64,000 nt of DNA from Macrostomum hystrix. Lineage: Eukaryota > Animalia > Platyhelminthes. How positions within the stretch are numbered: the stretch's first letter is position 1; each line of letters starts with the position of its first letter. Below the pieces are notes generated by a model. That model ran no database searches. It saw only the letters and a program-made list of their open reading frames with translations, and had not been told where the DNA came from. Of the stretch, positions 9,985 through 47,322 are shown piece after piece. Position numbers and translations under genes: made by a program. The stretch spans positions 6,820,001 through 6,884,000 of the forward strand of contig CATNEN010000034.1 in NCBI GenBank assembly GCA_950097015.1. The letters are read 5' to 3'.

Positions 9985-11960
9985 CGATCATCTGGAAAGA
10001 TGAGACCGCAAATAGGTGGCAGCGGCGTCTTTGTCGAGCCCGATACCGAGCTGTGCTTCGCTGCCGACCTCCAGCTTCCACGTGGAGCGCATGGCGATCG
10101 CTAAGGCCCTGCGCTGGGTGCTCTTGGCCCCACCCCTGCTGCACTCTCCCCGGTCCGGATCTACACGGACTCACTTAGCGCACTGGCAGCACTCGAGTCC
10201 GGCACTGGATCCTCTGGTGTCACCCACTTGACTTACTTGACTTAGCTGCAGGGGGCATCTTCCGGATGCAGCGGGGAGGCGTTGCCGCCCATTCCGCTAG
10301 CCCCTGGCGACCACGGGCAACTAAAGCTGCGGTGTCGCGCAGGGGGATCCGGTGGTGCCGGCGTCCGCAGCGCGGTCCTCCTCCGGAGAGTCCAGGAGGT
10401 GGAGGGTTGCTCGCCCGGTGGCCCTCAGGTATCGGACGAGCTGGCAGATGTTCTCAGGCCTGAAAACGTCGGGAGATCCGGGTTTGGGCCGAGATAGGTG
10501 AGCTGGTCCTGAGTGAAGGCGGGGCAGTCGCAAATAAAATGCTCTGCATCCTCAACATAGGAGAGGCAGAATTGGGGCATTGCCTTGCGGATTTTGCCTT
10601 GCAGGAAGCGGTGCCTGGCGAAACAGCCATGGCCAGAGAGGGCCATGGTAACTGCCCTGATGTCCTTGCGGTTCAGGCCAAGCAAGGCTTTGCGAAGGGC
10701 AGTGGAGGGACAAGGGACAGCAGCGCGAGACTGCCGACAATCGGCGGTATTGATGCATCTGTCCTTGTGCTTTGAGGTCACCCACTGGTTAATCCGAGTG
10801 TTGACGACGGCGGTAGGGGTGGAGACCGCAGGCACGGGGCCAAAAAGCGAACCCGTCGAACCGGCCTTATGGAGGCTGTCGGCCAATTCGTTACCAGGGT
10901 GGCCAGAGGGCCCTGGAATCCACCTTAGGGACACCTTGTTTTGGGTCTCTAAGCGGTTGAGTTGCGCGACGCAGTCGAGGACTGTGCGCGAGCAGGTGTG
11001 CGTGCGTCCAAGGGCATGGATCGCCGCCTGGCTGTCCGAATGGAGGAAGATTTCTGCTCCGTGGACGTTTTGGTTGATCAGCTCCAGGGCGCAGGAGCTG
11101 ATGGCGAGAACTTCGTTCTGGAAAACGGTAGAGTTTATGCCGGTGTGCTGGGAGAAGGTCGCCACAGTTTTCCCTCCGGACATAATGCAGTAGCCGAAAC
11201 CAGAGACCGAGTTGATTTGCGATCCGTCGGTGAAGCAGTGAATTTCACGGGGTTGGCCGTGGTCACGTACTTCCTGGCGAGGCGGAATGCTGGTTTTGAA
11301 TTTTTGCGGTGGGCACAGCGTCGACGGGATTCCGTCGGAGAGAATTTTGAGACCTCCTGCTCCGTCCAGGTCCCGTAGGCTGAGGTCGCCATGGGGCTGG
11401 AGGTTCCGCTTGCTGAAGGCAAGTTGCTTCCGGATGGAGATGCCCGCGTCCAGAAGACGACGAGCCGTCTTCATCGCCTCCCCCTTGATAAAAATATCTA
11501 AAGGGGGAAGGTCCATGGTGTCACCCACGGTCGACAACGTCTGGGCCAGCCTCGACGCACTATAGCTGCAGCAGGAATTAATTTATCTGCAATGGATCCC
11601 GGGCATTCTCGGCCAACAACACAGCTGTCGCGATGGCGCAAGACAACAAGCTCATTTCGTTTTCCGCCTCGCAGGCCGCCATCCATCGCCACTGCCTAGA
11701 TCGCGGTCATGAAACCTACGGCGCCACTGCCACCGGTGCACCAGCCACGAGTTGCCTGCACTGCTGATCACCTCGCACATAAGCCAGCGTAATACCTCTC
11801 GCGACGGCAATAGAGGCTTATCTGTCAGCTGCGCGCCAACCGCTGCCCTGCGTTGCGGGGCTTTCAGGCCACCATCGGTCTCCAGGTGGCGCCAACCTGC
11901 CGTTTCAGTGGCGAGGGCGTTACCCGAGCAGCTAGTTTCCGCCATGATGGCGATTAACCA
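9985..11960 (+). mobile_element. Old, degenerate RNase H-bearing non-LTR retrotransposon fragment (host), split by a nested insertion
   Basis: + strand motifs SFHVERMAIAKAL and IYTDSLSALAALES before 10227 continue after 11516 as [20 protein letters not shown] and IGLQVAPTCRFSGE; frameshifts and stops present. Confidence 0.7.
10228..11515 (-). mobile_element. 5'-truncated non-LTR retrotransposon (I/R1/Loa-like group) with RNase H and a C-terminal Cys-His motif
   Basis: ORF with [40 protein letters not shown] and [13 protein letters not shown]. 3' tail AAGTCAAGTAAGTCAA. 13-bp TSD TGGTGTCACCCAC at 10215-10227 and 11516-11528. Confidence 0.9.
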
Positions 11961-14353: not shown

Positions 14354-16285
14354 ATGTCTAGTGCTGTGTCAAGACCCACCCAGCCCAAATTGGAGCTTAT
14401 CTACTTCCCCATGCGAGCCAGAGGCGATGTGATTCGCCGCATCCTTATAGAGGCTGGCCTGACATTCACAGAGGTTCGCGTAGACATGGACGACAGCTGG
14501 CCTAGTCGCAAGTCGGAATTCCCGTTTGGCCAGCTGCCGGTGCTGCGAGTCGATGATGGTCGCCTAGTTGTGGCACAGTCGCATGCAATCGCCCGCTTTG
14601 CTGCCAGACTCACTGGCAATCACACACTGCTGGGGGACACGCGCGAGACTGCCGCCCTGATCGACATGTGGTACTACCAGGTAGTGGCTACTGTTGACCT
14701 TGTTTTTCTATACTTCACTGTGCTCTCATCCACCCCACCCTACACTCATCCACTCCACCATGCTCTTATCCACCCCACCCTACACTCATCCACTCGACCC
14801 TGCACTCATCCACCCCACCCTACACTCATCCACCCCACCCTATACTCATCCACCCCACCCTACACTCATCCACCCCACCTTACACTCATCCACCCCACCC
14901 TACACTCATCCACCCCACCCTACACTCATCCACCCCACCCTATACTCATCCACCCCACCCTACGCTCATCCACCCCACCCTACACTCATCCACTCCACCA
15001 TGCTCTTATCCTATCCACTCTAATCTCATCCACCCCACCCTACACTCATTCACTCGACCCTGCACTCATCCACCCCACCCTACACTCATCCACCCCACCC
15101 TATACTCATCCACCCCACCCTACACTCATCCACCCCACCCTATACTCATCCACCCCACCCTACGCTCATCCACCCCACCCTACACTCATCCACTCGACCC
15201 TGCACTCATCCACCCCACCCTACACTCATCCACCCCACCCTATACTCATCCACCCCACCTTACACTCATCCACCCCACCCTACACTCATCCACCCCACCC
15301 TATACTCATCCACCCCACCCTACGCTCATCCACCCCACCCTACACTCATCCACTCGACCCTGCACTCATCCACCCCACCCTACACTCATCCACCCCACCC
15401 TATACTCATCCACCCCACCCTACACTCATCCACCCCACCTTACACTCATCCACCCCACCCTACACTCATCCACTCCACCATGCTCTTATCCTATCCACTC
15501 TAATCTCATCCACCCCACCCTACACTCATTCACTCGACCCTGCACTCATCCACCCCACCCTACACTCATCCACCCCACCCTATACTCATCCACCCCACCC
15601 TACACTCATCCACCCCACCCTATACTCATCCACCCCACCCTACACTCATCCACCCCACCCTACACTCATCCACTCGACCCTGCACTCATCCACCCCACCC
15701 TACACTCATCCACCCCACCCTATACTCATCCACCCCACCCTACACTCATCCACCCCACCTTACACTCATCCACCCCACCCTACACTCATCCACCCCACCC
15801 TACACTCATCCACCCCACCCTATACTCATCCACCCCACCCTACACTCATCCGCCCTACCCTACTCATCAACCCACCTTACTTATCTACTCCACCCTACAC
15901 TCATCCACCCCACCTCCTTCTCCAATGTCAGGCCGAGGACGTGTTCGCCGAGTTCATTCCGCCATTCTACCTGGCGCCGGACACCGTGGACCAGAAGCTA
16001 ACAGACAACTGGAGCCGCTGGATGGCCCCTTTCGAGCGCGTCCTGAGTGGCGCAGATCGGCAGTACCTGGCCGGTGGGCCGGACATCAGTGTGGCTGATT
16101 ATCACTTTCTAGACGTGCTGGACATGGCATTCGCCTACGAGGCGCTGAACCATGACAGACTAGGCCTGAGGCAGCTAACGCCAGCCATTAGCAACTATCA
16201 CAACCGGCTGAGTCAGCGTCCCGGCTTACTGCGCTTCGCCGAGCATGTCAAAGACATTCGCTTCACTTTGGATGGGCCCCTGTAA
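14354..16285 (+). CDS. Cytosolic glutathione S-transferase (sigma/pi/alpha-like), 2 exons, 226 aa
   Basis: Exons 14354-14680 and 15932-16285 (CAG|GTAGTG ... TGTCAG|GCC). GST-N motifs LIYFPMRARGDVIR and FPFGQLPVL..D..VAQSHAIARF; GST-C motif YLAGGPDISVADYHFLDVLD. Confidence 0.9.
   Translation: MSSAVSRPTQPKLELIYFPMRARGDVIRRILIEAGLTFTEVRVDMDDSWPSRKSEFPFGQLPVLRVDDGRLVVAQSHAIARFAARLTGNHTLLGDTRETAALIDMWYYQVVATVDLVFLYFTVLSSTPPYTHPLHHALIHPTLHSSTRPCTHPPHPTLIHPTLYSSTPPYTHPPHLTLIHPTLHSSTPPYTHPPHPILIHPTLRSSTPPYTHPLHHALILSTLISSTPPYTHSLDPALIHPTLHSSTPPYTHPPHPTLIHPTLYSSTPPYAHPPHPTLIHSTLHSSTPPYTHPPHPILIHPTLHSSTPPYTHPPHPILIHPTLRSSTPPYTHPLDPALIHPTLHSSTPPYTHPPHPTLIHPTLHSSTPPYTHPLHHALILSTLISSTPPYTHSLDPALIHPTLHSSTPPYTHPPHPTLIHPTLYSSTPPYTHPPHPTLIHSTLHSSTPPYTHPPHPILIHPTLHSSTPPYTHPPHPTLIHPTLHSSTPPYTHPPHPTLIRPTLLINPPYLSTPPYTHPPHLLLQCQAEDVFAEFIPPFYLAPDTVDQKLTDNWSRWMAPFERVLSGADRQYLAGGPDISVADYHFLDVLDMAFAYEALNHDRLGLRQLTPAISNYHNRLSQRPGLLRFAEHVKDIRFTLDGPL
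14727..15915. repeat. 20-bp C-rich minisatellite (CACCCCACCCTACACTCATC) in the GST intron
   Basis: About 59 tandem units with variant blocks. Confidence 0.95.
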
Positions 16286-16626: not shown

Positions 16627-17373
16627 ATGCTGTCGCCCCACTCTGTGTCCGACCAGCTCAGCGATGGCGATGCCCAGCCTGGCAGCAGCGTTGTCGCTAA
16701 TGAAAACAATCAACTTGACGACACCGATGACCTTGATGAGCCGAATCCGCCGCCGCCGGCTGCTGCTCTTCTTGACGACGCCGATGTTGAACGATGCAGC
16801 CGTGACGACCTGCTGGCGATGCTGCGCGACCTGCTGGCCGATCGGGTTCGCCTACTTCGCCGACATTCGCGCACCGTCGACCAACTTGGCGGCCGGCTGC
16901 GCCTGCGCTCCGACGAGCTGCAGTCTCTCCGACAGTCGGCGGAATCTGTTGGGCGCGAGAATGCCGACCTGCGGCGCCTCCTGGCCGGTGTTGAGTCCGA
17001 GCGGCTGCGCCTGATGGACACCGGCCGGCAGTGGCAGGTGCTGGCCGGCCAGAGCGGCTCCGCTTTGGCCAATCAACTGGGCGACCTGCGCGCCAAGGTG
17101 GCGGGCCTGGAGCGGCTGCTCGGCCAGCTGGACTCCGGGCGCCGGTTGCCAGCCGACGGTCAGGAAGCTTCGTCCTCGTCGGCGGCTCACGTCGCAGTCT
17201 CCGGAGGTTCCATCGACGCTGGCATCGCTCGGCGTCTAGACGCTGTTGAAGCCTCGCTAGCCGACTGTTCAGCATCGACAATGTCGGCAGCCGAGGCGCT
17301 GATGCTGCGGCATTTGCTGACGCTGGCGAGGCAGAAGGCGGCCGGGGGAATGCCAACTAGTGTGACATCTTAG
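16627..17373 (+). CDS. CCDC85: CCDC85-family (DIPA-like) coiled-coil protein, single coding exon, 248 aa
   Basis: ATG ORF preceded by acceptor TTCCTTCGCAG. Segment ENADLRRLLAGVESERLRLMDTGRQWQVL...LGDLRAKVAGLE parallels the CCDC85 core (EN.ELR.L..FLDSERQR....RQWQLF...LAELE), compared from memory. Confidence 0.7.
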   Translation: MLSPHSVSDQLSDGDAQPGSSVVANENNQLDDTDDLDEPNPPPPAAALLDDADVERCSRDDLLAMLRDLLADRVRLLRRHSRTVDQLGGRLRLRSDELQSLRQSAESVGRENADLRRLLAGVESERLRLMDTGRQWQVLAGQSGSALANQLGDLRAKVAGLERLLGQLDSGRRLPADGQEASSSSAAHVAVSGGSIDAGIARRLDAVEASLADCSASTMSAAEALMLRHLLTLARQKAAGGMPTSVTS

Positions 17374-17765
17374 CCACTCCTGTGCGCTGCTAACTTGTCA
17401 CAGCTGTGTCTCAGTGGCCCATTGAACTGTTAGTGCTGTACGGTTCTGCCAACTGAAAGCTTCGTACATAAGATCAATCCGTGTTTTTTGTCTTTTTAAA
17501 TTATAGTTTTGACAAACTTTTCTCTTCGCAATCCGTTTTATTTTGCATGATAAAGTGTTTTGTGTCATGCCTATCTTCTAACAGAAGTTTTTTTGTTAAG
17601 AATGCAATCTATAGTTGTGTAATTAAACTTTTACAGCCCGTCTTTTATATTTTCTCTATAGAGTTTTCGTGTCTGGCTTGCTTTACTTTTTTATGCTTAG
17701 GGATTTTTTTCTCATTTATACCCTAAATTAGCCTGGCTAATGGCTAATCCTGGTATCGATTTAAA

Positions 17766-17895
17766 AGCTGGGTGAACTGAAGCACTGCAGACATAAGTGT
17801 CTTGCTAAAGGACACAATTTGTTCCAGTGGAGTCGGGAATCGAACCCCCGACCTTCAAGTCGTGAGTCGGGCGCTCTCACCACTAGGCTACAACC
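17766..17895 (-). mobile_element. tRNA-derived SINE family A, 3'-truncated copy
   Basis: Minus strand: A-box TAGCCTAGTGG, B-box GGTTCGATTCC, then body TGTGTCCTTTAGCAAGACACTT...TTCAGTTCACCCAGCT shared with copies at 27.0-27.3 kb and 29.2 kb. Confidence 0.85.
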
Positions 17896-18156
17896 TGATA
17901 CTCTAAGTACTCTGAAACTCTAGTAAAAATGTTCTTCTTTCTATATTAATAAGGTAATACGATTTAGTCTTCGAGTTTCCAGTAGATTTTAAAAGAAAAT
18001 TTTGTTTTCGCATATCTGAAGTCTCCTGTTCTGAAGTGTGGTTTTAAATGGCGTCGAGCCAAGCGCTGTTAATGTAATGTCTGAAATTAGTTTAATCTGT
18101 TTCTAACTCGAATGGAATAAAACCGCTACTTAAAAAATACAACGCTCTGTTTTCAG

Positions 18157-18534
18157 TCGCGCCCAAGCGGTACCGGAAGTCCAGCCTTTCCTTTGTCCTA
18201 TTATAAGGACCCCTATTTTCGCGTTGTCTGCCCGTTGCTAGGCAACGCTGCCGCCGCCAGCCTGTCGGTGTGCCTGTACGCCGGCAGCAGGCGCCTGCTG
18301 GGCAGGGACCGGCTGATCAGCCTGGTCATAGCTCTGCTGCCCTCTCCGTTCGCTATGGTCAGTGGCACCCGCTATTTCCGATTCACCTACGTCATTCACC
18401 GGACTGTCCAGCTTCCTAGAGATGCCTCTGGCAGGCAGACAAGCGCGAGGTTTCCTATGTGGGCCGGCATCATCGGCTGGCTGGAGCCCATGTTCGGCCC
18501 GCCTGTTTTGTCATCAGCTGGTTGGAAAAGTTGA
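18157..18534 (+). CDS. Putative small membrane protein of unknown family; no ATG start seen
   Basis: Open frame from acceptor TGTTTTCAG (18156) to TGA at 18534; GC3-rich island in AT-rich DNA; two hydrophobic segments. Confidence 0.4.
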   Translation, partial: SRPSGTGSPAFPLSYYKDPYFRVVCPLLGNAAAASLSVCLYAGSRRLLGRDRLISLVIALLPSPFAMVSGTRYFRFTYVIHRTVQLPRDASGRQTSARFPMWAGIIGWLEPMFGPPVLSSAGWKS

Positions 18535-19057: not shown

Positions 19058-19345
19058 CTACAGCTGGATGCAGTTGATGATCTGGCTTGCACTGTTGCCG
19101 CACCTGCTTGCCAGGCAGCTGGCCACGCCAAGCTGGTTCGGGCCGTGCGACAAGAAGCAGATAAGCAGGTTGGTCACCACGCAGGTCACCGAGCTGATGC
19201 CGTTCTGCTGCAGACAGCCGGTGTCAATGCGTATCATTGGCACCATCTTGTGTAGGATGTCGTTCGCGATCTCAGTTCTCAGCTCGGAAGTATAGACGGC
19301 TGCTGACAGGGCCGCCAGAGCGAACAGACAGATCAGCTTGTGCAT
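19058..19345 (-). CDS. Secreted six-cysteine peptide, copy A (diverged paralog, 95 aa)
   Basis: ATG ORF with signal peptide; 61/95 identical to copies C-F with no indels and all cysteines conserved. Confidence 0.85.
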   Translation of the reverse strand: MHKLICLFALAALSAAVYTSELRTEIANDILHKMVPMIRIDTGCLQQNGISSVTCVVTNLLICFLSHGPNQLGVASCLASRCGNSASQIINCIQL

Positions 19346-20026
19346 GGCCGCTGTGCTGTCGGGTGCTTGACGCTAAGGATTAGGACAAATTATTCTGGTG
19401 CTGAATTTGTCGGTTAGTCTTTTCGACAATTATTTTCCATGGACTAAGAAATACTCGGCATTCAGCTAGCCCGAGTTGCCTTCCTTTCGGGCAGTGCAAC
19501 CGCCCACGGCCTTGTCACGACTGACGTGGGACCTTCACAGCTTTATCCAGCGCCCTTATGCTTGCCTGCAGTCCGCTGCCTGGCCTGTCACGATAAAGCT
19601 GTAGATATCCTGGCCTTCTCTTAACTACTAATCATGTCAATGAGACAGGCATTTCGCATTTGACTCTTACTTGCGGCTATTCCTGACCCCTGCTTGTTTA
19701 GCGAACCTTCTGCACTTATGACCGGCACTTTAGGTGTTTAGAAAAATCATTTGAGTCGGCATAAACATGTCCCCGAAATAAAAACTTTAATAATTCAATA
19801 GTAGCAGCACAAAGGGTGCTCACCCCAATTTACGATTTGAAATCTAGACAATTGATGCGAGTCGGACACTACTACTTAATCATCATCATTATTCCATCCT
19901 TCCAACTTAGTGAGTTAAGTTGTTCAGTATGTGACATCTGTGACACTGTCACTAGTTAAGTGACAGAAATGCGAGAATTCTGCATGTCTTTCCTAAATTC
20001 CAAAAGCACTCTTCCGCGTCTTCCAG

Positions 20027-21281
20027 TCGTCGTCAGTCAGCTCTGCGAGCTGGCTTCTCTTTCCGTTGCCAGCGAGCAGAACTGTCCTGGCAGTTGAGCC
20101 GCGCCAATGCAGCCTACTTGCCATCGGCGAATCTCAGATTGCCCTGGCTGAGGCGTCCGGCAGTTTGGCGACCATTCAAACTGTGCGCGAGCTGATCGAG
20201 CAGCCTCTAGGGCCAGGCAAGGACACAGAACTGGCGATCGCTGCGGCTACGTCGAACGCTAATCAACTCCGGCGTCGGCGCTGGTTCGCCCGCGCCACAT
20301 GCGAACTTCTTACCGTCGGGCTATCCTCGGTGGAGTCAGTATCGCCCGACTTCACCGCAGCCACACTGATCAGTGCCGAAGGCATCCGGCTGCGCGTCGC
20401 TGCCCGTGGACTCGACTGTCCTGACTATCGCTTGGTTGACACGGAACTTCCAGTGCCTTTCTCTGGCGGCAGTTGTGGCGAAAGTAGAAGCGGCAGTCTA
20501 CGTCGACTGTTTGATCACTTTGTGGAAGTTTCTCGCTCATTGCTGCCGCATTGGGAGCTACTAGAGCTGCTGGACACTCGCCTGGTGGTGCTTGAACCTC
20601 GACTCCTTGCAGCCCAGTTGAAGGCGGCTCCCGTAATGCAATTGCAGAGGCCGCGCTGCCTTTACAGACGAGTGCTGCTTGCTGAGTAAGACCCGCATTT
20701 CTGCCTTCAGTATGTCTAGTGTCTGACAGTTAGATTGTCTGTCTCCAGTCACATAATTCCGATCCTTCGCATCCCACAGTCGTGCCAGCAGCCTGCTAAT
20801 CAGCCTTGATCCCGGCGCCAGTCCTTTTGCCCTGCCTTCCGTCAGCGCCGCCGGACCGGCTGCCGAAGCCGTAGAGGCCGCGTTGGCCGCTAACGCCACC
20901 GCCTGGCAACTTGGCGTTGAAGGTCATGGCGCTGATAATTTCCTGCGCAATCTGGCCGCCCTGCTTGGCCAGTCGGCCTCCCTGGCCTGGGCCTCGCCAG
21001 CCGCCTCTGTTGCAGCGGAGCTCAATGACGAATACCAGATCGGTAGAATTGAAAGCGTCGATGCTGTCGAGGAGACCATTGATTGCATTATCTGCTACGC
21101 CGACTGCGACGCCGCCGCGGAATGGATCGCTTGCGAGCGTTGCCGGCGCCGCTACCACCGCAGCTGCGCGGTGGAATGGCTGCGCGGCCTGCCGGACACG
21201 CGGCGCGGATTCAATCGGCTGCACGGCTGCTGCCTCTACTGCCGCGCCAGGATCAGCGTGCTTGCTGAGTCCAAGGACTGA
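20027..21281 (+). CDS. FANCL: E3 ubiquitin-protein ligase FANCL, 2 coding exons, start codon unresolved
   Basis: Exons 20027-20685 and 20780-21281 (GA|GTAAG ... CACAG|T). C-terminal FANCL RING: CIICY...CERCRRRYHRSCAVEWLRGLPDTRRGFNRLHGCCLYCRARISV; upstream LYRRVLL..LLISLDP..LP resembles the FANCL RWD region. Confidence 0.85.
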
Positions 21282-21706
21282 CTGCCTGTCCCTAATTAAA
21301 TATCGAGGATCTTCGACCGGAAACCCTAGAAGCTAATGCACGAATATTTTCTTACTTTAGTAGTTTCTGTGCACTTCATCTCCATACGAAGTCCGCAGCA
21401 CTGAATGTTTAGTTTGATTTCGGCTTGTCTGCATTTTTCCAATGTACAATCATCATATTGTACATTGTATTTCTATACCACTTAGTTCCATCGCATTTGT
21501 GTTCAAATTCCTCTTCTTTGCCTAGTAAAACATAAAACAGCTTATGTTATACATCAGCAATACTACGAGCTATTATTGAAATGCTAAGAAAAGAAAATAC
21601 ATTTAGACTAGAAGCAATTTGCAATAACATCGCAATCAACCCGCCATGACTGGCTGCAGCACTATAATTCAAAATATGTATTTCTGAGCTTGGACTAAGC
21701 AATAAT

Positions 21707-21995
21707 TTACAGCTTGATACAGCCGATGATCTGGATGGCGCTGCCAGCCGCACTTGCTGGCCAGGCAGCCGGCCAGTCCGCTGATGTTGGTGCCGTGGGA
21801 GAAGAAGCAGGTGATCAGGTTGCTGACCAGGCAGGTGATGGAGCTGACGCCGTTCTGCAGCAGGCAGTTGGTGTCGATGCTGAGCACGGGAACCATCTCG
21901 TGGATGATGTCGTTCACGACCTCATTCCTCTGCTCAGGGGTGTAGGAGGCGGCAGCGAAGGCCACGAGAGCGAACAGGCAGATCAGCTTGTACAT
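21707..21995 (-). pseudogene. Secreted six-cysteine peptide, copy B, with +1 frameshift near the 3' end (pseudogene, variant or sequence error)
   Basis: 289 bp versus 288 bp; extra base at ~21746 (CTGCCAGCCGC versus CTGCCGCCGC); shifted reading ends at 21669. Confidence 0.7.
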
Positions 21996-22990
21996 GGCTG
22001 CTGTGCTGTGGATTTCGAGAGTGCTTTGGAGCTGATGCGGAGCTGAGGACACGACTGTGTGTTGACTGTGATGATTGGGCTGCTTCAGTCGGTCGCTGAG
22101 GTCTCATTTATGGACTGGCTGAGCTGCTGCAGGTGACGCGGTCTCGGACACTCACGCCGCCCACGGCCTGTCACGCCTGTCAGCCAGTTCCCACTATCAG
22201 CGTGGTAGAATGTAGTTGAATGGCAACTTTTCGTCAATGCTAAATCACCGGCATGCATGATAGCCGGTCTTGCATAGAGCGGCTTTCTGTTATTGGAAAG
22301 AGATCCTGCTGTGCCTGCTGTTGCTTCAAGTTGCAAGTAGTAAAACTCTGATACGACGTACGATGACCACTTGGGTTGAAAAGAGGCACGTATCTTGAAT
22401 CTCAGTACATTGAAAAAGTTTAGATAATCTTTGTCATACGATGCTGTTTAATATTTCTCAGTTTTTTATCGATATTTATTGAGTGAATCTCATTTTCTTT
22501 CTAAGAATCTTGTTCCTTGATTGTCATTTGAGTTTCTTAAATAGTAACGGCAGTTTGTTCTTGCGTTGGATTAAGAGTTGCAGCCTGTAAGCGCGAGCTG
22601 TTCGTTGTACTCCAATCAACCTGCCGCATTGCGAGTGTAGTGGCTAAGGAGCTCGTACAAGGTTGTAACACCTGGCCTTCTCTCTCGCAAGCCATGTCTG
22701 TTCTTGACTTACGTCGTCTACCGAAACCAGTATACAGAAATAACTGAACAGCTGTGTCGATGTTGTCGTCGGAGCTTTAGTCGGAAGACAGCTTTTACAC
22801 TTCTATAGAAGCCACATTATTAAAGCCTAGTTTCGCCATTGAAGAACCGACTTATTAAAGACTAAGTGACCAGACTGTCACATACCGATCAGATGATTCG
22901 TTCTAGTTACAATATATTAAAAGCAAACTAAGGAATGATGATGATCGACACTGGCTGGAGAATGGTGATCTGCCACTTTAGTTGGAGTTG

Positions 22991-23285
22991 AGTGGCAGAG
23001 CGGTCAAAGCCGTTTGTCGCTCGTAACAATGTCGCTAAGCTCGATTCCGTGGGGAGGCCACATGCATTTGGGGCGCAGGCTTGGGGGCTTGTCAATTTAC
23101 GCCCTTGAGAGGCAACGTCCAAGACACAGTGAGAAAAGTCAGGGCAGATGTGTGACTTCGTGCCTGCGTACGTTGTCTATGTGAAAGTTTGCTCAGGAGA
23201 CAGCAAATCGGTCAGAACCGCCTCCTCGCTGGCTGCGGGTCTACAGGCACAAATTGATGTGCCAGCTAGTGCCCACTGGCAAAAA
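22991..23285 (+). mobile_element. tRNA-derived SINE family B, diverged copy
   Basis: A-box TGGCAGAGCGG, B-box-like GCTCGATTCC, body AAAGTCAGGGCAGATGT...GCCTCCTCGCTGGCTGCGGGTC shared with copies at 43.0 kb and 58.4 kb. Confidence 0.75.
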
Positions 23286-23735
23286 AGAATATTTTAATCG
23301 TACAGATCGTACTCGTCAGTCTGAATCGCCTAAAATGAGTAACATAGATTTGACCTTGAAAAGAAGACCCAGAGTGGCACGAGTTCAGTTTGCCCGCCCT
23401 CGCACTCTCGGTGCGAATCACACCCACACGATCTGTGCCTCGAACTCGACTACCATGCAGCAAAGAACCAAGTCAATAGCTCGTATCTAATCACTCGTCG
23501 AATTGACAGCCTAACCAGCCAGCTGTGAAATGCTGACACTGACAACTGCCGTCATCATGACGCGCGATTGGCAGTGGGAGTGTCCGAGACCGCGTCACCT
23601 GCAGCAGCTCAGTCAGTCCATAAATGAGACCTCAGCGACCGACTGAAGCAGCCCAATCATCACAGTCAACACACAGTCGTGTCCTCAGCTCCGCATCAGC
23701 GCCAAAGCACTCTCGCAATCCACAGCACAGCAGCC

Positions 23736-24023
23736 ATGTACAAGCTGATCTGCCTGTTCGCTCTCGTGGCCTTCGCTGCCGCCTCCTACACCCCTGAGCA
23801 GAGGAATGAGGTCGTGAACGACATCATCCACGAGATGGTTCCCGTGCTCAGCATCGACACCAACTGCCTGCTGCAGAACGGCGTCAGCTCCATCACCTGC
23901 CTGGTCAGCAACCTGATCACCTGCTTCTTCTCCCACGGCACCAACATCAGCGGACTGGCCGGCTGCCTGGCCAGCAAGTGCGGCGGCAGCGCCATCCAGA
24001 TCATCGGCTGCATCAAGCTGTAA
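23736..24023 (+). CDS. Secreted six-cysteine peptide, copy C (95 aa)
   Basis: ATG in GCAGCCATGT context; signal peptide MYKLICLFALVAFAAA; Cys at 44, 55, 63, 77, 82 and 92; CATAAAT TATA-like box at 23619-23625. Confidence 0.9.
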   Translation: MYKLICLFALVAFAAASYTPEQRNEVVNDIIHEMVPVLSIDTNCLLQNGVSSITCLVSNLITCFFSHGTNISGLAGCLASKCGGSAIQIIGCIKL

Positions 24024-24082
24024 AGTCTCTTCAGCCTGTTAAATCCTTCAAATACACAACACTTTGCTTTGATATCTTGTCG

Positions 24083-24293
24083 GTTGAGTTGATTCAGTTG
24101 ATTCAGTTGATTGAGTTGATTGAGTTGATTCAGTTGATTCAGTTGATTCAGTTGATTCAGTTGATTGAGTTGATTGAGTTGATTCAGTTGATTCAGTTGA
24201 TTCAGTTGATTCAGTTGATTGAGTTGATTCAGTTGATTCAGTTGATTCAGTTGATTCAGTTGATTCAGTTGATTCAGTTGATTCAGTTGATTC
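24083..24293. repeat. 9-bp microsatellite (GTTGATTCA/GTTGATTGA)n just downstream of copy C
   Basis: About 23 tandem units. Confidence 0.95.
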
Positions 24294-25521
24294 ATGGTTC
24301 AAATGCCCATTGCCTACGTCACGACAGCTCCAAAACCGAATGAAAGATTTTGTTGAATGTCCACCATATGGATCAAATCATCTGCCCTTAGACGATGAAA
24401 TAGAATTCAAAGCCGTCCTACGTCAGCATAGTCGAGATATTCAGTGATTATTGTCGAAGACCATGGTCACAAGGACAACTAACATTACTAAATAAGCCTC
24501 TATGGCGAATCCGTAAAGTTCAATAATAAAATAAATTACAGTATAATCAGTAACATATAGTCAACAACAAAAAGATGAAATAGGTAGTTCATGCCACTAA
24601 ATACACGACAGGAGTCTTTGAATATCTCGACGATGTCGATGTTTTGAATAGAGCGCAAAAGTTTAGTCCGTGTTCTTGATTTTCATGGCCATTGGTTGAA
24701 TATTTTAGGCAGATTCAGAAAAAAGAAACATGTGGGGTATTTGAAATTCCCCCATTGTCTTTCAATGCTGTTTTAGAGCCAGCGCGCGAACAAAGGCCGC
24801 TCCGCCGCATAGTCCATTGCTTCAAAAAAGTTTGAAAGTTTTCAAATTCTTCTTTTCACTCATCGCATGTGCAAATATATTCTGCTTTGAAATCAGGTCT
24901 GTATATAATAAAACTCATTGTTTAATTTGCACTGAAAGCGACATAGTTAACGAAAAACAAAGGCTTTTACAATTCAATTAAAAATAATTCAAGTGCAGAA
25001 ATGATCAGTACCGCACTCTAATCGGCATGAGTCCGTCTCGATCCGCCGAATAACTTTTATGTCGCTAAGGAAGCTAAAAACTTATATTTTAACGCTTAAT
25101 GCACGAAAGCAGGAATACTCCTAGGCCAAAATTAAACGCGGCACCAAGGCCTCACATTCAAATTACTTCTGCTTACATTTCTAAACGACAATGCTTGTTC
25201 ATTCATGCGTCAAGCAAGCAAATTTCAGCAGAATGCATTCTGTTCCCTTAGCTTCATAAATATTCTCAAATTATAAACTGAAGGGCTAAGTAAGGCTGAA
25301 ATTTACTTCTTTCTAGCAGCTAGCTAAGGCTCTCAATATATACAATATATATACAATATATAGATTATGTGAAAACGGAACCCAAAAACTAATCTCCAGA
25401 TGAAACGATAAAAATGAATAACTGAGAGCATGTTTACGCGCTAGACTTTTAATAATGTCTAATGTCTAAGATTCAAATATCTAAGCATAATATGTATTTG
25501 AAGAATGTGACGGCCAGACAT

Positions 25522-25809
25522 TTACAGCTTGATGCAGCCGATGATCTGGATGGCGCTGCCGCCGCACTTGCTGGCCAGGCAGCCGGCCAGTCCGCTGATG
25601 TTGGTGCCGTGGGAGAAGAAGCAGGTGATCAGGTTGCTGACCAGACAGGTGATGGAGCTGACGCCGTTCTGCAGCAGGCAGTTGGTGTCGATGCTGAGCA
25701 CGGGAACCATCTCGTGGATGATGTCGTTCACGACCTCATTCCTCTGCTCAGGGGTGTAGGAGGCGGCAGCGAAGGCCACGAGAGCGAACAGGCAGATCAG
25801 CTTGTACAT
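25522..25809 (-). CDS. Secreted six-cysteine peptide, copy D (95 aa)
   Basis: Protein identical to copies C, E and F. Confidence 0.9.
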   Translation of the reverse strand: MYKLICLFALVAFAAASYTPEQRNEVVNDIIHEMVPVLSIDTNCLLQNGVSSITCLVSNLITCFFSHGTNISGLAGCLASKCGGSAIQIIGCIKL

Positions 25810-26989
25810 GGCTGCTGTGCTGTGGATTGCGAGAGTGCTTTGGAGCTGATGCGGAGCTGAGGACACGACTGTGTTGAGTGTGATGATTGGGCTGCTTCAG
25901 TCGGTCGCTGAGGTCTCATTTATGGACTGGCTGAGCTGCTGCAGGTGACGCGGTCTCGGACACTCACACCGCCCACGGCCTGTCACGCCTGTCACATGGG
26001 GCCTACTATCAGCGTGGTAGGCATTGTTATCTTCCACTTTGATTTGAGGTATTGCTGCTGGATTGTGGTTTCCTGATGAGACTTATCGAGCGTCGACTTT
26101 TTCGGATCATCTCGCGTCGCTGTTTGTGCCTGTCAAAATTGACTCGAATTGTTCGGTACTTAGTTACCACTGAGCTCATTGCCTATTTCGTTTGGCGCAA
26201 AAATCGCTTGTCAATTCACCCTACGAGTTTGAACTGTGGGTTCGGTTCTTGCCCCGATTTTCCTCTGTAATTTCTCAGGCTTGGCTCCCCAGCAGTTTGT
26301 TACTGTCTCGTTGCAGTGACCTGGCAGTCTTATCATATAGAGGTTATTGGGTTTACTAGTTCACGATGAAGTCTCAAGATTTCAGAAATGCAAGTTAAAT
26401 TTACAACGAATCGGTTTTTTATTTACGAACATCTAAATTAGTTCTCATGTCTGTGCTCATATTGTGCTAAATGATTCTGCTAATTGCCTGCCCTGTATCA
26501 ACCTGCATTTTAGAACTCGTTTCATGCCAACTCAAATCAAATGAAATGTCATGTACAAGTACACCACCCTTCGTGACCCCCTATGAGGTCGTGTATTTTG
26601 GCATCCAACTGGAAGCAATGCTTTTGGAGTTGTTCTAGTTGAAGAAGAAACAATTTCCAACAAGTTTTTCGCTATATTATAAGTACACAAGAACCAGTAT
26701 GAGCAACTGCAGCATCCTGACCATCGTGAAAAAAAGAAGTCGGTTCCTATAAAGACAAAAATTAAATTCATTTCTCTGTACAAATGGATCTAAAGATAGT
26801 TTCAACAGACATCTGTCTGATTTCGAATGCATTGAATTCAGGGCCCGCGGTGAAAAAATTCTCCCGATGTATCTATTGGACATTTCAATAGGACATGGCG
26901 TCACACTCTACAACAGGTGATGGAGTTGGTAAGAATTTGTTCCCAGATTGAGTGAGGAATTCTCGTTCTGCGACTCCATATACTGATAA

Positions 26990-27301
26990 TTAATAATAAT
27001 TAATAACAACTGATTACACCTGCCCCAATTGGGCCAGATGTGCAGCCGACAGCACAGCCGCAGCTATTGCGCGGCGCATCTGGAGGCAGCTGTTCAGTCC
27101 ATGGACTGAGGAGACGCCACACCCACCCTCAATTATAGAGTATACCCCAGCTAATGCTGGTACCCATTTAACAGCTGGGTGAACTGAAGCAATGCAGATT
27201 AAGTGTCTTGCTAAAGGACACAAATTGTTCCAGTGGAGTCGAGAATCGAACCCCCGACTTTTTAGTCGTGAGTCCGACGCCCTAAAAACTAGGCTACAAC
27301 C
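26990..27301 (-). mobile_element. tRNA-derived SINE family A, near full-length (~310 bp) with (TTA/ATT)n tail
   Basis: tRNA-like head at 27301-27230; central CACCCAGCTGTTAAATGGGTACC block; 3' tail at ~26990-27012. Confidence 0.85.
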
Positions 27302-27340
27302 TCTCTTGGTTGAGCAAGAGCATAAATACGAGCCCTTATA

Positions 27341-28092
27341 TCACTCGTAATTACATGTTACTAGGTTCGGGATAAAATCACTCGTAATTACATGTTTCTA
27401 GGTTCGGGATAAAATCACTCGTAATTACATGTTACTAGGTTCGGGATAAAATCACTCGTAATTACATGTTACTAGGTTCGGGATAAAATCACTCGTAATT
27501 ACATGTTTCTAGGTTCGGGATAAAATCACTCGTAATTACATGTTTCTAGGTTCGGGATAAAATCACTCGTAAATACATGTTACTAGGTTCGGGATAAAAT
27601 CACTCGTAATTACATGTTTCTAGGTTCGGGATAAAATCACTCGTAATTAAATGTTACTAGGTTCGGGATAAAATCACTCGTAATTACATGTTACTAGGTT
27701 CGGGATAAAATCACTCGTAAATACATGTTACTAGGTTCGGGATAAAATCACTCGTAATTACATGTTTCTAGGTTCGGGATAAAATCACTCGTAATTACAT
27801 GTTACTAGGTTCGGGATAAAATCACTCGTAAATACATGTTACTAGGTTCGGGATAAAATCACTCGTAAATACATGTTTCTAGGTTCGGGATAAAATCACT
27901 CGTAAATACATGTTACTAGGTTCGGGATAAAATCACTCGTAAATACATGTTTCTAGGTTCGGGATAAAATCACTCGTAATTACATGTTACTAGGTTCGGG
28001 ATAAAATCACTCGTAATTACATGTTACTAGGTTCGGGATAAAATCACTCGTAAAATACATGTTTCTAGGTTCGGGATAAAATCACTCGTAAA
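27341..28092. repeat. 37-bp minisatellite (TCACTCGTAATTACATGTTACTAGGTTCGGGATAAAA)
   Basis: About 20 head-to-tail copies with no spacers. Confidence 0.95.
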
Positions 28093-28515
28093 AGTTCCAT
28101 TTCAAAATACTTAAAGTACCAAAATGGATTTGACCTTGAAAAGAAGACCCAGAGTGGCACGAGTTCAGTTTGCCCGCCCTCGCACTCTCGGTGCGAATCA
28201 CACCCACACGATCTGTGCCTCGAACTCGACTACCATGCAGCAAAGAACCAAGTCAATAGCTCGTATCTAATCACTCGTCGAATTGACAGCCTAACCAGCC
28301 AGCTGTGAAATGCTGACACTGACAACTGCCGTCATCATGACGCGCGATTGGCAGTGGGAGTGTCCGAGACCGCGTCACCTGCAGCAGCTCAGCCAGTCCA
28401 TAAATGAGACCTCAGCGACCGACTGAAGCAGCCCAATCATCACAGTCAACACACAGTCGTGTCCTCAGCTCCGCATCAGCTCCAAAGCACTCTCGAAATC
28501 CACAGCACAGCAGCC

Positions 28516-28803
28516 ATGTACAAGCTGATCTGCCTGTTCGCTCTCGTGGCCTTCGCTGCCGCCTCCTACACCCCTGAGCAGAGGAATGAGGTCGTGAACG
28601 ACATCATCCACGAGATGGTTCCCGTGCTCAGCATCGACACCAACTGCCTGCTGCAGAACGGCGTCAGCTCCATCACCTGTCTGGTCAGCAACCTGATCAC
28701 CTGCTTCTTCTCCCACGGCACCAACATCAGCGGACTGGCCGGCTGCCTGGCCAGCAAGTGCGGCGGCAGCGCCATCCAGATCATCGGCTGCATCAAGCTG
28801 TAA
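28516..28803 (+). CDS. Secreted six-cysteine peptide, copy E (95 aa)
   Basis: Protein identical to C, D and F; lies in a 678-bp block (28127-28804) shared with copy C (23347-24024). Confidence 0.9.
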   Translation: MYKLICLFALVAFAAASYTPEQRNEVVNDIIHEMVPVLSIDTNCLLQNGVSSITCLVSNLITCFFSHGTNISGLAGCLASKCGGSAIQIIGCIKL

Positions 28804-29199
28804 ATGCCTCTCTGTCTGTAGTTTGCAGCAGTAAATATACCGCGTTGACAACGGCTGTAGTGCCTTAAATTCCTAAATTTTAAACTTTTTCGCATTTTTG
28901 GTGCTTGGTTAACGACAAAGCAGCTTCATCACAAGTTGCTCTGGTGTATCATCCTGTCGCGCCACTGTGAATTATATCTCCAGCTGACTGGAGTCTCCTA
29001 AGAGTCTTAACGCTCGAAAAAAGCGTTGAAGCTCTTGCATGCCATGACCAAGGCAGCGGATCCTTAATTGGTTCGGCCCATGTACGAGTATGAATGTCGA
29101 GAGCCTAATCTTTCTGAACGCCATCGACTGCTAGCTTACTTACTTACGAGTTCTTACAACTGGCGCGTCTGTGCCAGTATCGTCTGTGTACGCTATTTA

Positions 29200-29303
29200 A
29201 CGACTAAAAAGTCCCGGGTTCGATTCTCGACTCCACTGGAACAAATTGTGTCCTTTAGCAAGACACTTAATCTGCATTGCTTCAGTTCACCCAGCTGTTA
29301 AAT
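29200..29303 (+). mobile_element. tRNA-derived SINE family A, internal fragment
   Basis: GGTTCGATTCTCGACTCCACTGGAACAAATTGTGTCCTTTAGCAAGACACTT...CCCAGCTGTTAAAT matches the other two copies. Confidence 0.85.
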
Positions 29304-29710
29304 ATGTCGCGCGAGGCCCCTATCGCAACCCCAAGGTAAAAGAGAAAAGACAGCCTGGGGGTGCGCCCACCCCGCACTAATCAGGTTCTCTGGGCCGCGT
29401 CGGCGATCTCCACCCGGCCTGTGTATCGAATTAATGAAGGCGTGGAGGTCGCGGATCGTCTCCGGAGTGATCAGCTCGTCGATCCCAAGGAGGTGACCGA
29501 GATGTTGTCTGCGCTCTTTCTCAAAGAACGGGCAGAAGGTGACGTGGTGTGCCGCGGTGTCCTCACCCAGGCCGCAGAAACAGCAGGTGGGAGCACCCGG
29601 TTTGGAGTGAAATATGTCTCTGGATGAAGCCATGACCCGTAGTGCCCATGCGAATCTCCCTCCTGATGAGAGAAATAATCAGAGACTTTCCGGATTATTT
29701 CCGACATAGC
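29304..29710 (-). mobile_element. 3' fragment of a non-LTR retrotransposon ORF2 (Cys-His zinc motif)
   Basis: APTCCFCGLGEDTAAHHVTFCPFFEKERRQHLG resembles the LINE C-terminal CxxC...H....C motif. Confidence 0.65.
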
Positions 29711-30320
29711 GGAACGGGCTTGCCTGTAGTCGTCAGAACTGTGGGTGGTGCTGGCTGTTGACCCATTTCTTAACAGAGAACGAACACGTGGTATTTCAAA
29801 TACTCATGCACATTTTTTTCCGCATCTCAAAAAATCTGCTCATTCACCAATGGCTGTCATTTATTGCGTTGTTGCAAGAGGCAAGAGACCGCTCTGCCAC
29901 TCACCCCCCTGAAGCTCTGAAGCTATAGTGTGTGGCCAGTCTGAACAGACATAGTAAATCCCACAGGTTCCTTTTTGTGGTAGCGAAAATTTATCTATCT
30001 ATAAGGTTGATCAGAACGTCCTTAGTCAAATAGTGTGCATCACCCAACAGGGCTTCAGTTTAGTTTCTAGGCAAGGACAACAGCGTATTAAAAACCACAC
30101 TAGCATCAAGCAGGCTTCGGTTGTCAAGCCCACCAGACCCACCGCTAAATGTTGCTGACTGACTGTGTAGTTGACACATTAGCTTGTGAACATATTCCTT
30201 TTCTGATCTATATTAATGTCACAGAAAGAAGCCAAGGACTAAAATACTAATATTAGGCAAGACACACGAAATGTCGTTTATTTGTTATGAGCTCCGATCA
30301 AAAGACAGTCATACAGGCAT

Positions 30321-30608
30321 TTACAGCTTGATGCAGCCGATGATCTGGATGGCGCTGCCGCCGCACTTGCTGGCCAGGCAGCCGGCCAGTCCGCTGATGT
30401 TGGTGCCGTGGGAGAAGAAGCAGGTGATCAGGTTGCTGACCAGACAGGTGATGGAGCTGACGCCGTTCTGCAGCAGGCAGTTGGTGTCGATGCTGAGCAC
30501 GGGAACCATCTCGTGGATGATGTCGTTCACGACCTCATTCCTCTGCTCAGGGGTGTAGGAGGCGGCAGCGAAGGCCACGAGAGCGAACAGGCAGATCAGC
30601 TTGTACAT
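30321..30608 (-). CDS. Secreted six-cysteine peptide, copy F (95 aa)
   Basis: Protein identical to C, D and E. Confidence 0.9.
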   Translation of the reverse strand: MYKLICLFALVAFAAASYTPEQRNEVVNDIIHEMVPVLSIDTNCLLQNGVSSITCLVSNLITCFFSHGTNISGLAGCLASKCGGSAIQIIGCIKL

Positions 30609-31635
30609 GGCTGCTGTGCTGTGGATTGCGAGACTGCTTTGGCGCTGATGCGGAGCTGAGGACACGACTGTGTGTTGACTGTGATGATTGGGCTGCTTCA
30701 GTCGGTCGCTGAGGTCTCATTTATGGACTGGCTGAGCTGCTGCAGGTGACGCGGTCTCGGACACTCACGCCGCCCACGGCCTGTCACGCCTGTCACATGG
30801 GGCCTACTATCAGGTTGACAGCCCTTTTTATTAGTATCTGCGCGGCTTGGTTATGCTGTCCGTTAGGTAGCTTCTTACGAGTAATTCCCTGCTGAGTTGT
30901 ACTCGACACGTTTTGGGGCTAATTAATCATCGACGTGACTTATCGGGAAACCAGTTAGCTGCCAAGCAGATTTCACTAATCGTTTGTCATTCCACCCTAA
31001 GATAAAAATATTTTCTGCGTGCTAAAATGACCGCTCCTGATTTCTAACCATGGCCACTAAGCACAGCAAAGCGCTCCTGTCACTGCTTTTCAATTTTGAC
31101 AGTTCCCATGCAACACATTTAATAAAAAATGTGGTTTTGTGTTGCCTACTAAATTGACTATTCGATAAAGTTAATTGATTGTGGTATCTTTGAATATTTA
31201 TATCTGTGGTAATTCATGCACCATCGCACATAACTTCAAATCACTTTAAACTGTGAGGTCTGCGTTCTGCTTTGCGTCAGGTAATAACTAAAGATGTATG
31301 AAAAATGATTGAATTCTGGTCTATTATTTTTTGCGAAACTTTCATGCGAGTTCAAACAATGTTAATCAATGCGAGTCAGGTAGTACGAGCTAGAATTATA
31401 GAATACTAAATCTGTGTGTGAGAATTTATTCTGGATAATAAATATTAGAAAAAGTATTAGACTAGTGCGTCATGATATTAAGCTTGAAACATACTCAGGG
31501 CTATTCAAGAAGCAGCTAGTTGTTTTCGAAGGAGCTGCACCAATAAAAAACACCTCACATTCAGAAAAAATTATTTCACCCAACAGCATTGTCTTTCATT
31601 AAAGTCTTGATACTTCACTGCTAATAGTCATGACA

Positions 31636-46300: not shown

Positions 46301-47322
46301 TTCTCCCTGTCTAGTCCATCCCGTCTCATTTCTCCCTGTCTAGTCCATCCAGTCTCATTTCTCCCTGTCTAGTCCTTTCCGTCTCATTCTCCCTGTCTAG
46401 TCCATCCAGTCTCATTTCTCCCTGTCTAGTCCATCCAGTCTCATTTCTCCCTGTCTAGTCCATCCAGTCTCATTTCTCCCTGTCTAGTCCATCGTCTCAT
46501 TTCTCCCTGTCTAGTCCATCCAGTCTCATTTCTCCCTGTCTAGTCCATCCAGTCTCATTTCTCCCTGTCTAGTCCATCCAGTCTCATCTCTCCCTGTCTA
46601 GTCCATCGTCTCATCTCTCCCTGTCTAGTCCATCGTCTCATTTCTCCCTGTCTAGTCCATCCAGTCTCATTTCTCCCTGTCTAGTCCATCCAGTCTCATT
46701 TCTCCCTGTCTAGTCCTTTCCGTCTCATTCTCCCTGACTAGTCCATCCAGTCTCATTTCTCCCTGTCTAGTCCATCCAGTCTCATTTCTCCCTGTCTAGT
46801 CCTTTCCGTCTCATTCTCCCTGTCTAGTCCATCCAGTCTCATTTCTCCCTGTCTAGTCCATCCAGTCTCATTTCTCCCTGTCTAGTCCATCCAGTCTCAT
46901 TTCTCCCTGTCTAGTCCATCCAGTCTCATTTCTCCCTGTCTAGTCCATCCAGTCTCATTTCTCCCTGTCTAGTCCATCCAGTCTCATTTCTCCCTGTCTA
47001 GTCCATCCAGTCTCATTTCTCCCTGTCTAGTCCATCCAGTCTCATTTCTCCCTGTCTAGTCCATCCAGTCTCATTTCTCCCTGTCTAGTCCATCCAGTCT
47101 CATTTCTCCCTGTCTAGTCCTTTCCGTCTCATTCTCCCTGTCTAGTCCATCCAGTCTCATTTCTCCCTGTCTAGTCCATCCAGTCTCATTTCTCCCTGTC
47201 TAGTCCTTTCCGTCTCATTCTCCCTGTCTAGTCCATCTAGTCTCATTTCTCCCTGTCTAGTCCATCCAGTCTCATTTCTCCCTGTCTAGTCCATCCAGTC
47301 TCATTTCTCCCTGTCTAGTCCA
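43365..47322. repeat. ~4 kb pyrimidine-rich minisatellite, 27-29 bp unit (CTCCCTGTCTAGTCCATCCAGTCTCATTT)
   Basis: About 140 tandem units with variant blocks repeated at higher order. Confidence 0.97.

Follow-up and report, generated by a model that had tools for sequence, protein, structure and literature searches.

What is encoded by a cluster of small, near-identical genes in the genome of Macrostomum hystrix, and why is the gene present in so many copies? The cluster lies in a 64,000-nt stretch of DNA that we analyzed as a whole (hereafter the window; GenBank assembly GCA_950097015.1, contig CATNEN010000034.1, positions 6,820,001 to 6,884,000 of the forward strand, with all coordinates below counted from its first letter), and comprises six copies, named A to F, of a gene for a small protein with a signal peptide and six cysteines. 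Macrostomum is a free-living flatworm model in which the members of this six-cysteine family are unstudied. Our analysis indicates that the cluster is probably an array of compact, single-exon genes that was amplified for dosage and whose product is an abundant somatic secretory protein restricted to Macrostomum. Clusters of genes for small, secreted, cysteine-rich proteins that are limited to one lineage are already familiar; what is new here is the characterization of a family confined to Macrostomum, a confidently modeled fold without a neighbor in the PDB, a conserved and strong promoter module, concerted evolution that is limited to promoter and coding sequence (CDS), and an expression profile that is somatic, constitutive, and very high.

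Copies and Organization of the Array

Copies were detected by listing the open reading frames (ORFs) of the window and by tblastn searches with the window proteins (Table 1). The original prediction, which was made from the sequence of this DNA, had described six intact ORFs of 288 bp. This holds for copies A, C, D, E, and F, but copy B is frameshifted by a one-base indel: its frame terminates in an unrelated tail (ORF 21669-22052), and the tblastn match covers residues 1-83 only. The frameshift could be that of a real pseudogene or an indel of the assembly. As had also been predicted, and as both codon comparison and tblastn bore out, copies C to F encode the same protein, the four intact copies compared having no nonsynonymous differences and one synonymous difference at most, while the protein of copy A is 64.2% identical to that of copy C across 95 amino acids (aa), without indels. 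The ORFs are far beyond what would be expected by chance, since two other Macrostomum genomes contain conserved ORFs of the family.

Table 1. Coordinates of the six gene copies, their promoter modules, and the syntenic neighbors in the window. GC3, proportion of G and C at third codon positions.
Feature	Position	Strand	Description
Copy A	19058..19345	-	Intact CDS of 95 codons plus stop; divergent "A-type" subfamily; GC3 0.81
Copy B	21707..21995 (289 bp)	-	C-type copy, frameshifted by a one-base indel; intact promoter module
Copy C	23736..24023	+	Intact CDS; 16-aa signal peptide and 79-aa mature six-cysteine protein
Copy D	25522..25809	-	Intact CDS; protein identical to C
Copy E	28516..28803	+	Intact CDS; protein identical to C
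Copy F	30321..30608	-	Intact CDS; protein identical to C
C-type array	21705..30831	mixed	Five units (B to F), from self-comparison
Promoter module of B	22106..22135	-	E-box CACCTG, 17 nt, TATA-like CATAAAT
Promoter module of C	23596..23625	+	CACCTG-N17-CATAAAT
Promoter module of D	25918..25947	-	CACCTG-N17-CATAAAT
Promoter module of E	28376..28405	+	CACCTG-N17-CATAAAT
Promoter module of F	30719..30748	-	CACCTG-N17-CATAAAT
FANCL-like gene (two ORFs)	20066..21281	+	E3 ligase-type gene outside the family; FANCL_C, 7e-13; between A and the array; syntenic anchor
Small conserved neighbor ORF	18193..18534	+	Tail-to-tail with A; syntenic anchor; no Pfam family

Self-comparison of the window showed that units B to F share a block of 455-518 bp that is 97-99% identical (684 bp in the comparison of C with E). 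The block extends from ~165-220 bp 5′ of the ATG to a few bases beyond the stop codon, and what the five units have in common is the promoter, the 5′ leader, and the CDS only. The spacers between them are unique DNA, composed of satellites and pieces of retroelements. In contrast to an array of the same family in the sister species M. lignano, the units of the window alternate in orientation, with B/C and D/E forming head-to-head pairs and F standing unpaired, and they are homogenized separately. Copies of the window array differed from each other by a synonymous divergence (dS) of 0-0.02, and those of the M. lignano array by 0.03-0.08, but dS between the two arrays was 0.15-0.22. Because copies are closer to each other within a species than to the array of the other species, they appear to be subject to concerted evolution, and the distribution of identity indicates that gene conversion or recent re-amplification homogenizes promoter and CDS but leaves the spacers to drift. 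An origin of the copies as retrocopies was considered and rejected, as the repeated unit contains the promoter. Together, the unique spacers and the inclusion of the promoter in the unit argue against both retrocopies and an artefact of the assembly.

Promoter Module, Codon Bias, and Selection

Each of the units B to F has, from ~140 to ~110 nt before its ATG, a module composed of an E-box and a TATA-like element separated by 17 nt. The pattern CACCTG-N17-CATAAAT has five matches in the window, all of them upstream of B to F and none elsewhere, where 0.01 would be expected. An E-box/TATA pair with a spacing of 17-18 nt also precedes the copies of the M. lignano array, the Mlig000320 locus of that species, and a gene of a third species, the latter with a CAGCTG variant of the E-box. 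Copy A is without the module.

The C-type CDSs have a GC3 of 0.94, compared with 0.59-0.73 in neighboring genes, and use ATC, TGC, and ACC in 11 of 11, seven of seven, and five of five cases, respectively. When the C-type gene of the window was compared with that of M. lignano, we obtained a nonsynonymous divergence (dN) of 0.11 and a dS of 0.20, whereas the flanking genes gave a dN of 0.27-0.31 and a dS of 0.75-1.40; dN is thus 2.5-fold, and synonymous divergence 4-7 times, below that of the flanking genes. The between-species dN/dS of the family, 0.5-0.86, is high, and rapid evolution of the protein was considered as an explanation and rejected. Since both dN and dS are below those of the flanking genes, the high ratio reflects selection on codon usage, with dS suppressed by codon bias, rather than fast evolution. 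Judged from these comparisons, the C-type protein is well conserved relative to the flanking genes, consistent with purifying selection.

With regard to the 3′ ends, 11 family copies from three species were compared, and 7 of them have the hexamer AAATAC 21-50 nt past the stop codon, including copies A, C, and D of the window and copies at loci L001 and L002. This hexamer may act as a variant polyadenylation signal in a 3′ untranslated region that would be very short. The remaining copies of the 11 have AATAAA- or AGTAAA-type signals 24-39 nt past the stop codon.

Distribution of the Family and Synteny with M. lignano

Pfam searches with hmmscan gave no meaningful match at E ≤ 10 for both window proteins and 13 aligned members of the family. 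An HMMER profile search of 1.84 billion representative proteins retrieved M. lignano proteins only, with two exceptions, P0009 and P0010. The former (UniRef A0A1I8GVX6, M. lignano, 979 aa) is a chimeric gene model named "C-type lectin domain-containing" with a family copy at residues 103-187, and is probably an annotation fusion; the latter, a 1977-aa repeat protein, matched in nine weak stretches, and this doubtful match was taken as spurious. A profile search of a 5.8-billion database at E ≤ 1 returned the same eight proteins and added nothing, two word-indexed searches found the family in Macrostomum only, and a scan of metagenome contigs gave 65 pattern matches, none of which was confirmed. 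The window's own proteins are absent from the protein collection that was searched.

The window proteins match the Macrostomum family with E values of 1e-25 to 1e-47 and have its signal peptide and its ~79-aa mature part with the characteristic cysteine pattern. Paralogs in M. lignano (BOX15_Mlig001791, Mlig000320, Mlig013012, Mlig018888, Mlig029556, Mlig019425/026862, and others) are 40-87% identical, with all six cysteines invariant. About 20 M. lignano entries are present in databases as "hypothetical protein", and a few of them were automatically named "Saposin B-type domain-containing protein" by UniRef. The original prediction had called the family unrecognised; this is correct insofar as no described family claims its members, but the ~20 entries were already in the databases. 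Its further statement that no known family could be assigned agrees with the absence of Pfam matches at E ≤ 10 and with the empty sequence and fold searches of the PDB described below. In the literature searched, 12 M. lignano gene IDs had no mention in a main text, publications on saposins, antimicrobials, glands, and cell atlases contained nothing on the Macrostomum six-cysteine family, and the supplements of PMC5816591, PMC5730564, and PMC12732829 held no rows for the M. lignano family IDs. As far as can be judged from these sequence searches, the family is restricted to Macrostomum and has no recognizable relatives outside the genus.

The position of the cluster beside the FANCL-like gene is also conserved, as established by tblastn. 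The order in the window (small ORF, copy A, FANCL-like gene, array B to F) is mirrored at the end of M. lignano contig NIVC01000671.1, where a set of three C-type copies plus a fragment is followed by the FANCL-like gene, then by an A-type copy, and finally by the small ORF. Copy A is the positional ortholog of the M. lignano A-type copy (L001:13124-13408), to which it is 63% identical. The two FANCL-like ORFs, which were searched separately and unjoined, are 53-54% identical to L001:9409-11561, and the small ORF is 64% identical to L001:14951-15259 (tblastn), giving a range of 53-64% for the flanking genes of the two genomes (dS 0.75-1.4). Divergence of this degree shows that the window belongs to a Macrostomum species other than M. 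lignano. By synteny, the window cluster corresponds to the Mlig001791/013012 loci, and the layout of A-type copy, FANCL-like gene, and C-type array predates the split from M. lignano. Among the M. lignano loci examined, an array was seen only at the FANCL-linked locus. A partial extra family copy is located at the end of that array (L001:1511-1780). The distant paralogs (Mlig026862 and Mlig029556) and the highly expressed Mlig000320 are mostly single copies at other loci (L004-L008), and two further weak tblastn matches were found nearby at L004.

Expression of a Paralog in M. lignano

Published tables include a paralog that resembles the C-type genes closely: Mlig000320.g4 (P0016, PAA46020.1) is 87% identical to the protein of copies C to F and has the same promoter module and a GC3 of 0.94. 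In a comparison of adults with hatchlings (four pools each), its baseMean was 7601, and that of g3 was 6647, with adult/hatchling log2 fold changes of 0.12 and 0.07, respectively, neither of them significant (DESeq2; PMC10092323, Table S2). Among the ~95 rows listed from that table, one gene exceeded 7,600 and most had a baseMean of ~100-300. In a second study (PMC7336406, Table S8), a 288-nt model had counts of 3806, 7806, 5528, and 3575 in fragments A, B, C, and D, respectively, and was assigned to the class "Non-Specific". The two 288-nt models of that table had ~3,800 reads in fragment A, which is the head only, ~7,900 in B, ~5,700 in C, and ~3,700 in D, which is the whole worm, and the paralog's reads were as numerous in head-only fragments as in whole worms. 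Social group size had no effect, with no significant contrast (Tables S9 and S10), and the paralog carried no germline or neoblast flag (Table S6). For a third model, g1, the values were inconsistent between the tables of the two studies.

Expression is thus body-wide from hatching, and the protein would therefore serve the soma and not reproduction. Mlig000320.g3/g4 showed neither adult bias, nor restriction to testis, ovary, or tail, nor social sensitivity. A role as a seminal-fluid protein or pheromone, which the original prediction had listed among the candidates, was contradicted by the equal expression of the paralog in adults and in hatchlings, the latter being without gonads and prostate, by the equality of head and whole worm, and by the lack of a social effect. 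Amplification for dosage, which it had also proposed, fits the codon bias, the presence of a promoter in each copy, and the very high expression of the paralog. By analogy with M. lignano, the expression profile favors a constitutive product of the epidermis, the rhabdite glands, other glands, or the gut.

Predicted Protein and Comparison with Known Systems

The cysteines of the mature C protein are located at residues 28, 39, 47, 61, 66, and 76, and reproduce exactly the predicted spacing C-x10-C-x7-C-x13-C-x4-C-x9-C. Like P20, D25, G33, and G67, they do not vary among 16 family sequences with identities as low as 40%, while the gap between the third and fourth cysteines is 11-13 in distant paralogs. 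The N-terminus is conserved and has the n/h/c layout of a signal peptide. The mature C protein has a mass of 8.3 kDa, an isoelectric point (pI) of 5.4, a net charge of -2, and a grand average of hydropathy (GRAVY) of +0.54, and the mature A protein a pI of 6.85, a net charge of 0, and a GRAVY of +0.46, the charges being those that had been predicted. Small and aliphatic residues are abundant and charged residues are few. The mature part had been described as hydrophobic and amphipathic; hydrophobic it is, but amphipathicity is weak, with a hydrophobic moment above that of shuffled sequences in helix 37-51 only, one of five predicted helices (41 of 2000 shuffles). Both the acidic charge and the weak amphipathicity agree with the earlier view that this is not a typical cationic antimicrobial peptide.

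An AlphaFold2 model built from a 13-sequence alignment had a predicted local distance difference test (pLDDT) score of 85.4 and a predicted template modeling score of 0.71. It contains helices at residues 4-18, 26-31, 37-51, 55-66, and 70-74, and a small bridge joins residues 23-24 to residues 77-78; the five helices, at a pLDDT of 85, accord with the predicted family of small, secreted-type, helical six-cysteine proteins. The model of a 47%-identical paralog has the same helix layout at lower confidence (pLDDT 70). In the first model, the geometry of the helices suggests that the disulfides are nested (1-6, 2-5, and 3-4) and that two of them staple the hairpin of the third and fourth helices.

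Some paralogs carry the automatic saposin name, and the original description called the family reminiscent of saposin-like proteins (SAPLIPs). In saposins, two cysteines are located near the N-terminus, two near the C-terminus, and a further pair in the middle, and two disulfides connect helix 1 with the C-terminal helix. Like SAPLIPs such as amoebapores, NK-lysin, and trematode SAPs, the Macrostomum proteins are of secreted type, ~80 aa long, hydrophobic, and often multi-copy, with four to five helices and three probably nested disulfides. Unlike them, they have their first cysteine at mature residue 28 and a helix 4-18 that lacks cysteines and is unstapled. Neither SapB_1 (PF05184) nor SapB_2 (PF03489) matched any of the 13 members (hmmscan, E ≤ 10), and when the family profile was compared with 177,635 PDB sequences (hmmsearch, E ≤ 10), the search returned SecB and a viral phosphoprotein only, at chance level, and no chain of the saposin family. 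Foldseek comparison of the two models with the PDB gave no match at E ≤ 0.001; the best E values were 2.1 and 3.5, with template modeling (TM) scores of at most 0.35, and no saposin was among the matches listed (the best 50 of 88 at E ≤ 10 for the first model and 44 for the second), although short helical proteins are a weak point of Foldseek and the pLDDT of the second model is only 70. One model was also compared with BFVD, where it had no significant neighbor. The resemblance to saposin-like proteins thus stands for size, helices, and hydrophobicity, but membership fails in the profile, PDB sequence, fold, and cysteine-layout comparisons. Membership in the saposin family is not supported, while a saposin-like way of working is possible.

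Secretion, helices, and three disulfides are also shared with Euplotes pheromones, Aplysia attractin, and insect odorant-binding proteins, members of which are contained in the PDB. The Macrostomum family differs from these in having no sequence or fold match in the PDB and in the expression of its paralog, which is neither reproductive nor sensory. Odorant-binding proteins have a fold of six helices with three interlocked disulfides. Their PBP_GOBP profile did not match in the Pfam search, and the sole odorant-binding protein among the Foldseek matches listed was AgamOBP5, with an E value of 5.6 and a TM score of 0.27.

Possible Function and Alternative Explanations

The unit of the array is ~0.5 kb long and consists of a conserved E-box and TATA-like promoter, a leader of ~90-115 nt, a 288-nt CDS in which nearly all codons end in C or G, and a short 3′ end. 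If the cluster is a dosage array, the product would lose its 16-aa signal peptide and fold into a hydrophobic, mildly acidic protein of 8.3 kDa in which three disulfides lock five short helices into a bundle. Gene conversion or recent re-amplification would keep promoter and CDS near-identical as the spacers drift, and the protein, by homology with the M. lignano paralog, would be made at a very high level along the body from hatching. The hydrophobic, disulfide-locked helical build, as read from sequence and model, suggests the binding of hydrophobic partners outside the cell. Tentatively, we propose that such partners (lipids, membranes, or components of secretions) may be bound in surface mucus or in rhabdite or gland secretions, in a barrier or defense role. 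The protein might then work in a saposin-like way without demonstrable membership in that family. Equally speculative is the suggestion, drawn from the model, that the family represents a fold not yet in the PDB, with its four C-terminal helices locked by three nested disulfides and its N-terminal helix free, which would have arisen in Macrostomorpha and would be among the most abundant body-wide secretory products. If so, it would constitute a new class of extracellular protein that binds hydrophobic partners or forms a surface barrier.

Several points weigh against the reading of the cluster as a dosage array for an abundant somatic secretory protein. Neither Pfam nor Foldseek gave a lipid-binding or saposin signature. 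Secretion is read from the signal-peptide-like N-terminus, and the pairing of the disulfides from helix geometry, only. The weak amphipathicity and negative charge do not indicate a classical pore-forming or cationic antimicrobial mode. Copy A, being without the promoter module, may be regulated differently or weakly. The expression figures stem from a paralog in another species and apply to the window locus by analogy, with reads that are not cleanly assignable among near-identical copies and with gut, epidermis, rhabdite glands, and pharyngeal glands not separable.

Alternatively, the protein could have a structural or material role, self-assembling as part of a secretion that is made body-wide, such as rhabdites or the mucus matrix, rather than binding ligands or membranes. 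The very high, constitutive, body-wide expression of the paralog from hatching would fit this, as would the abundance of small and aliphatic residues, the scarcity of charged ones, and the strong constraint on the sequence relative to its neighbors. However, the model is compact, globular, and disulfide-locked, without the repeats or low-complexity stretches typical of matrix proteins, and we regard such a role as unlikely. Somewhat less likely still is that the family consists of true but very divergent SAPLIPs which, like amoebapores, NK-lysin, or the SAPs of flukes, insert into membranes or extract their lipids for digestion or antimicrobial killing. A length of 79 aa, about five helices, six cysteines that are probably nested, and marked hydrophobicity are all compatible with this, and UniRef applied the saposin name to a few M. 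lignano members. Yet that automatic label was attached to only some of a set of near-identical paralogs, and the 13 members had no SapB_1 or SapB_2 match and the PDB profile search no saposin-family chain, both at E ≤ 10. In addition, no saposin was among the Foldseek matches listed for the two models (best E values 2.1 and 3.5), and the cysteine-free N-terminal helix means that the hallmark double staple from helix 1 to the C-terminus is absent.

A reproductive protein, either a component of the seminal fluid or a mating pheromone, might have been expected on general grounds, as lineage restriction and tandem amplification are common in Macrostomum reproductive genes (a theme of PMC7336406) and the between-species dN/dS of 0.5-0.86 looks high. 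This explanation is very improbable in view of the equal expression in hatchlings and adults, the class "Non-Specific" instead of testis, ovary, or tail, the equal read numbers in head-only fragments and whole worms, and the lack of a response to social group size. The high ratio itself is artefactual, since codon bias suppresses dS, and dN is 2.5-fold below that of the flanking genes. We give even less credence to the idea that the array is an artefact of assembly or a set of dead copies, which would account for the near identity of the units and the frameshift in copy B. Each unit is set in unique flanking DNA, a separate M. lignano assembly has at least three C-type copies and an A-type copy at the syntenic site, and the four intact copies have no nonsynonymous changes among them and intact promoters.

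Taxon-restricted, highly expressed secreted proteins carry much of the lineage-specific biology of mucus, defense, and surface chemistry. The present case offers a confident structural model without a PDB neighbor as well as a clear case in which concerted evolution is limited to promoter and CDS amid unrelated spacers. The compact, conserved E-box and TATA module, which is evidently very strong, could be used to mark the cell type that produces the protein. In addition, an automatic "saposin" label is corrected and a reproductive reading removed.

Other Features of the Window

Scans of the window for tRNAs and Rfam families gave no matches. Ordinary flanking genes or exons include an ORF with a CCDC85 match (16627-17373, +, 1.7e-09) and one with an RGS match (56675-57133, -, 7e-12). 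A 370-aa ORF with an RNase H domain (10428-11537, -, 2.7e-10) is presumably a retroelement fragment. An interspersed repeat of 100-150 bp is present three times (17743-17896, 27150-27302, and 29200-29303), and one of its copies adjoins an ORF of 111 aa (29298-29633, -) with a Cys/His motif, which resembles the tail of a retroelement ORF (no Pfam match at E ≤ 0.01). The three repeat copies are probably truncated retrotransposon ends dispersed in spacers.

Satellites are found at 43373-47322 (29 bp, 139 copies), 47499-50986 (~3.5 kb of (AGTG)n, with a GC skew near +1), 14725-15914 (20 bp, 60 copies), 27340-28091 (37 bp, 20 copies), and 24087-24294 (9 bp, 23 copies). The 37-bp satellite sits between copies D and E, and the 9-bp satellite begins directly after the stop codon of copy C. 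Several of these satellite arrays generate long spurious ORFs.

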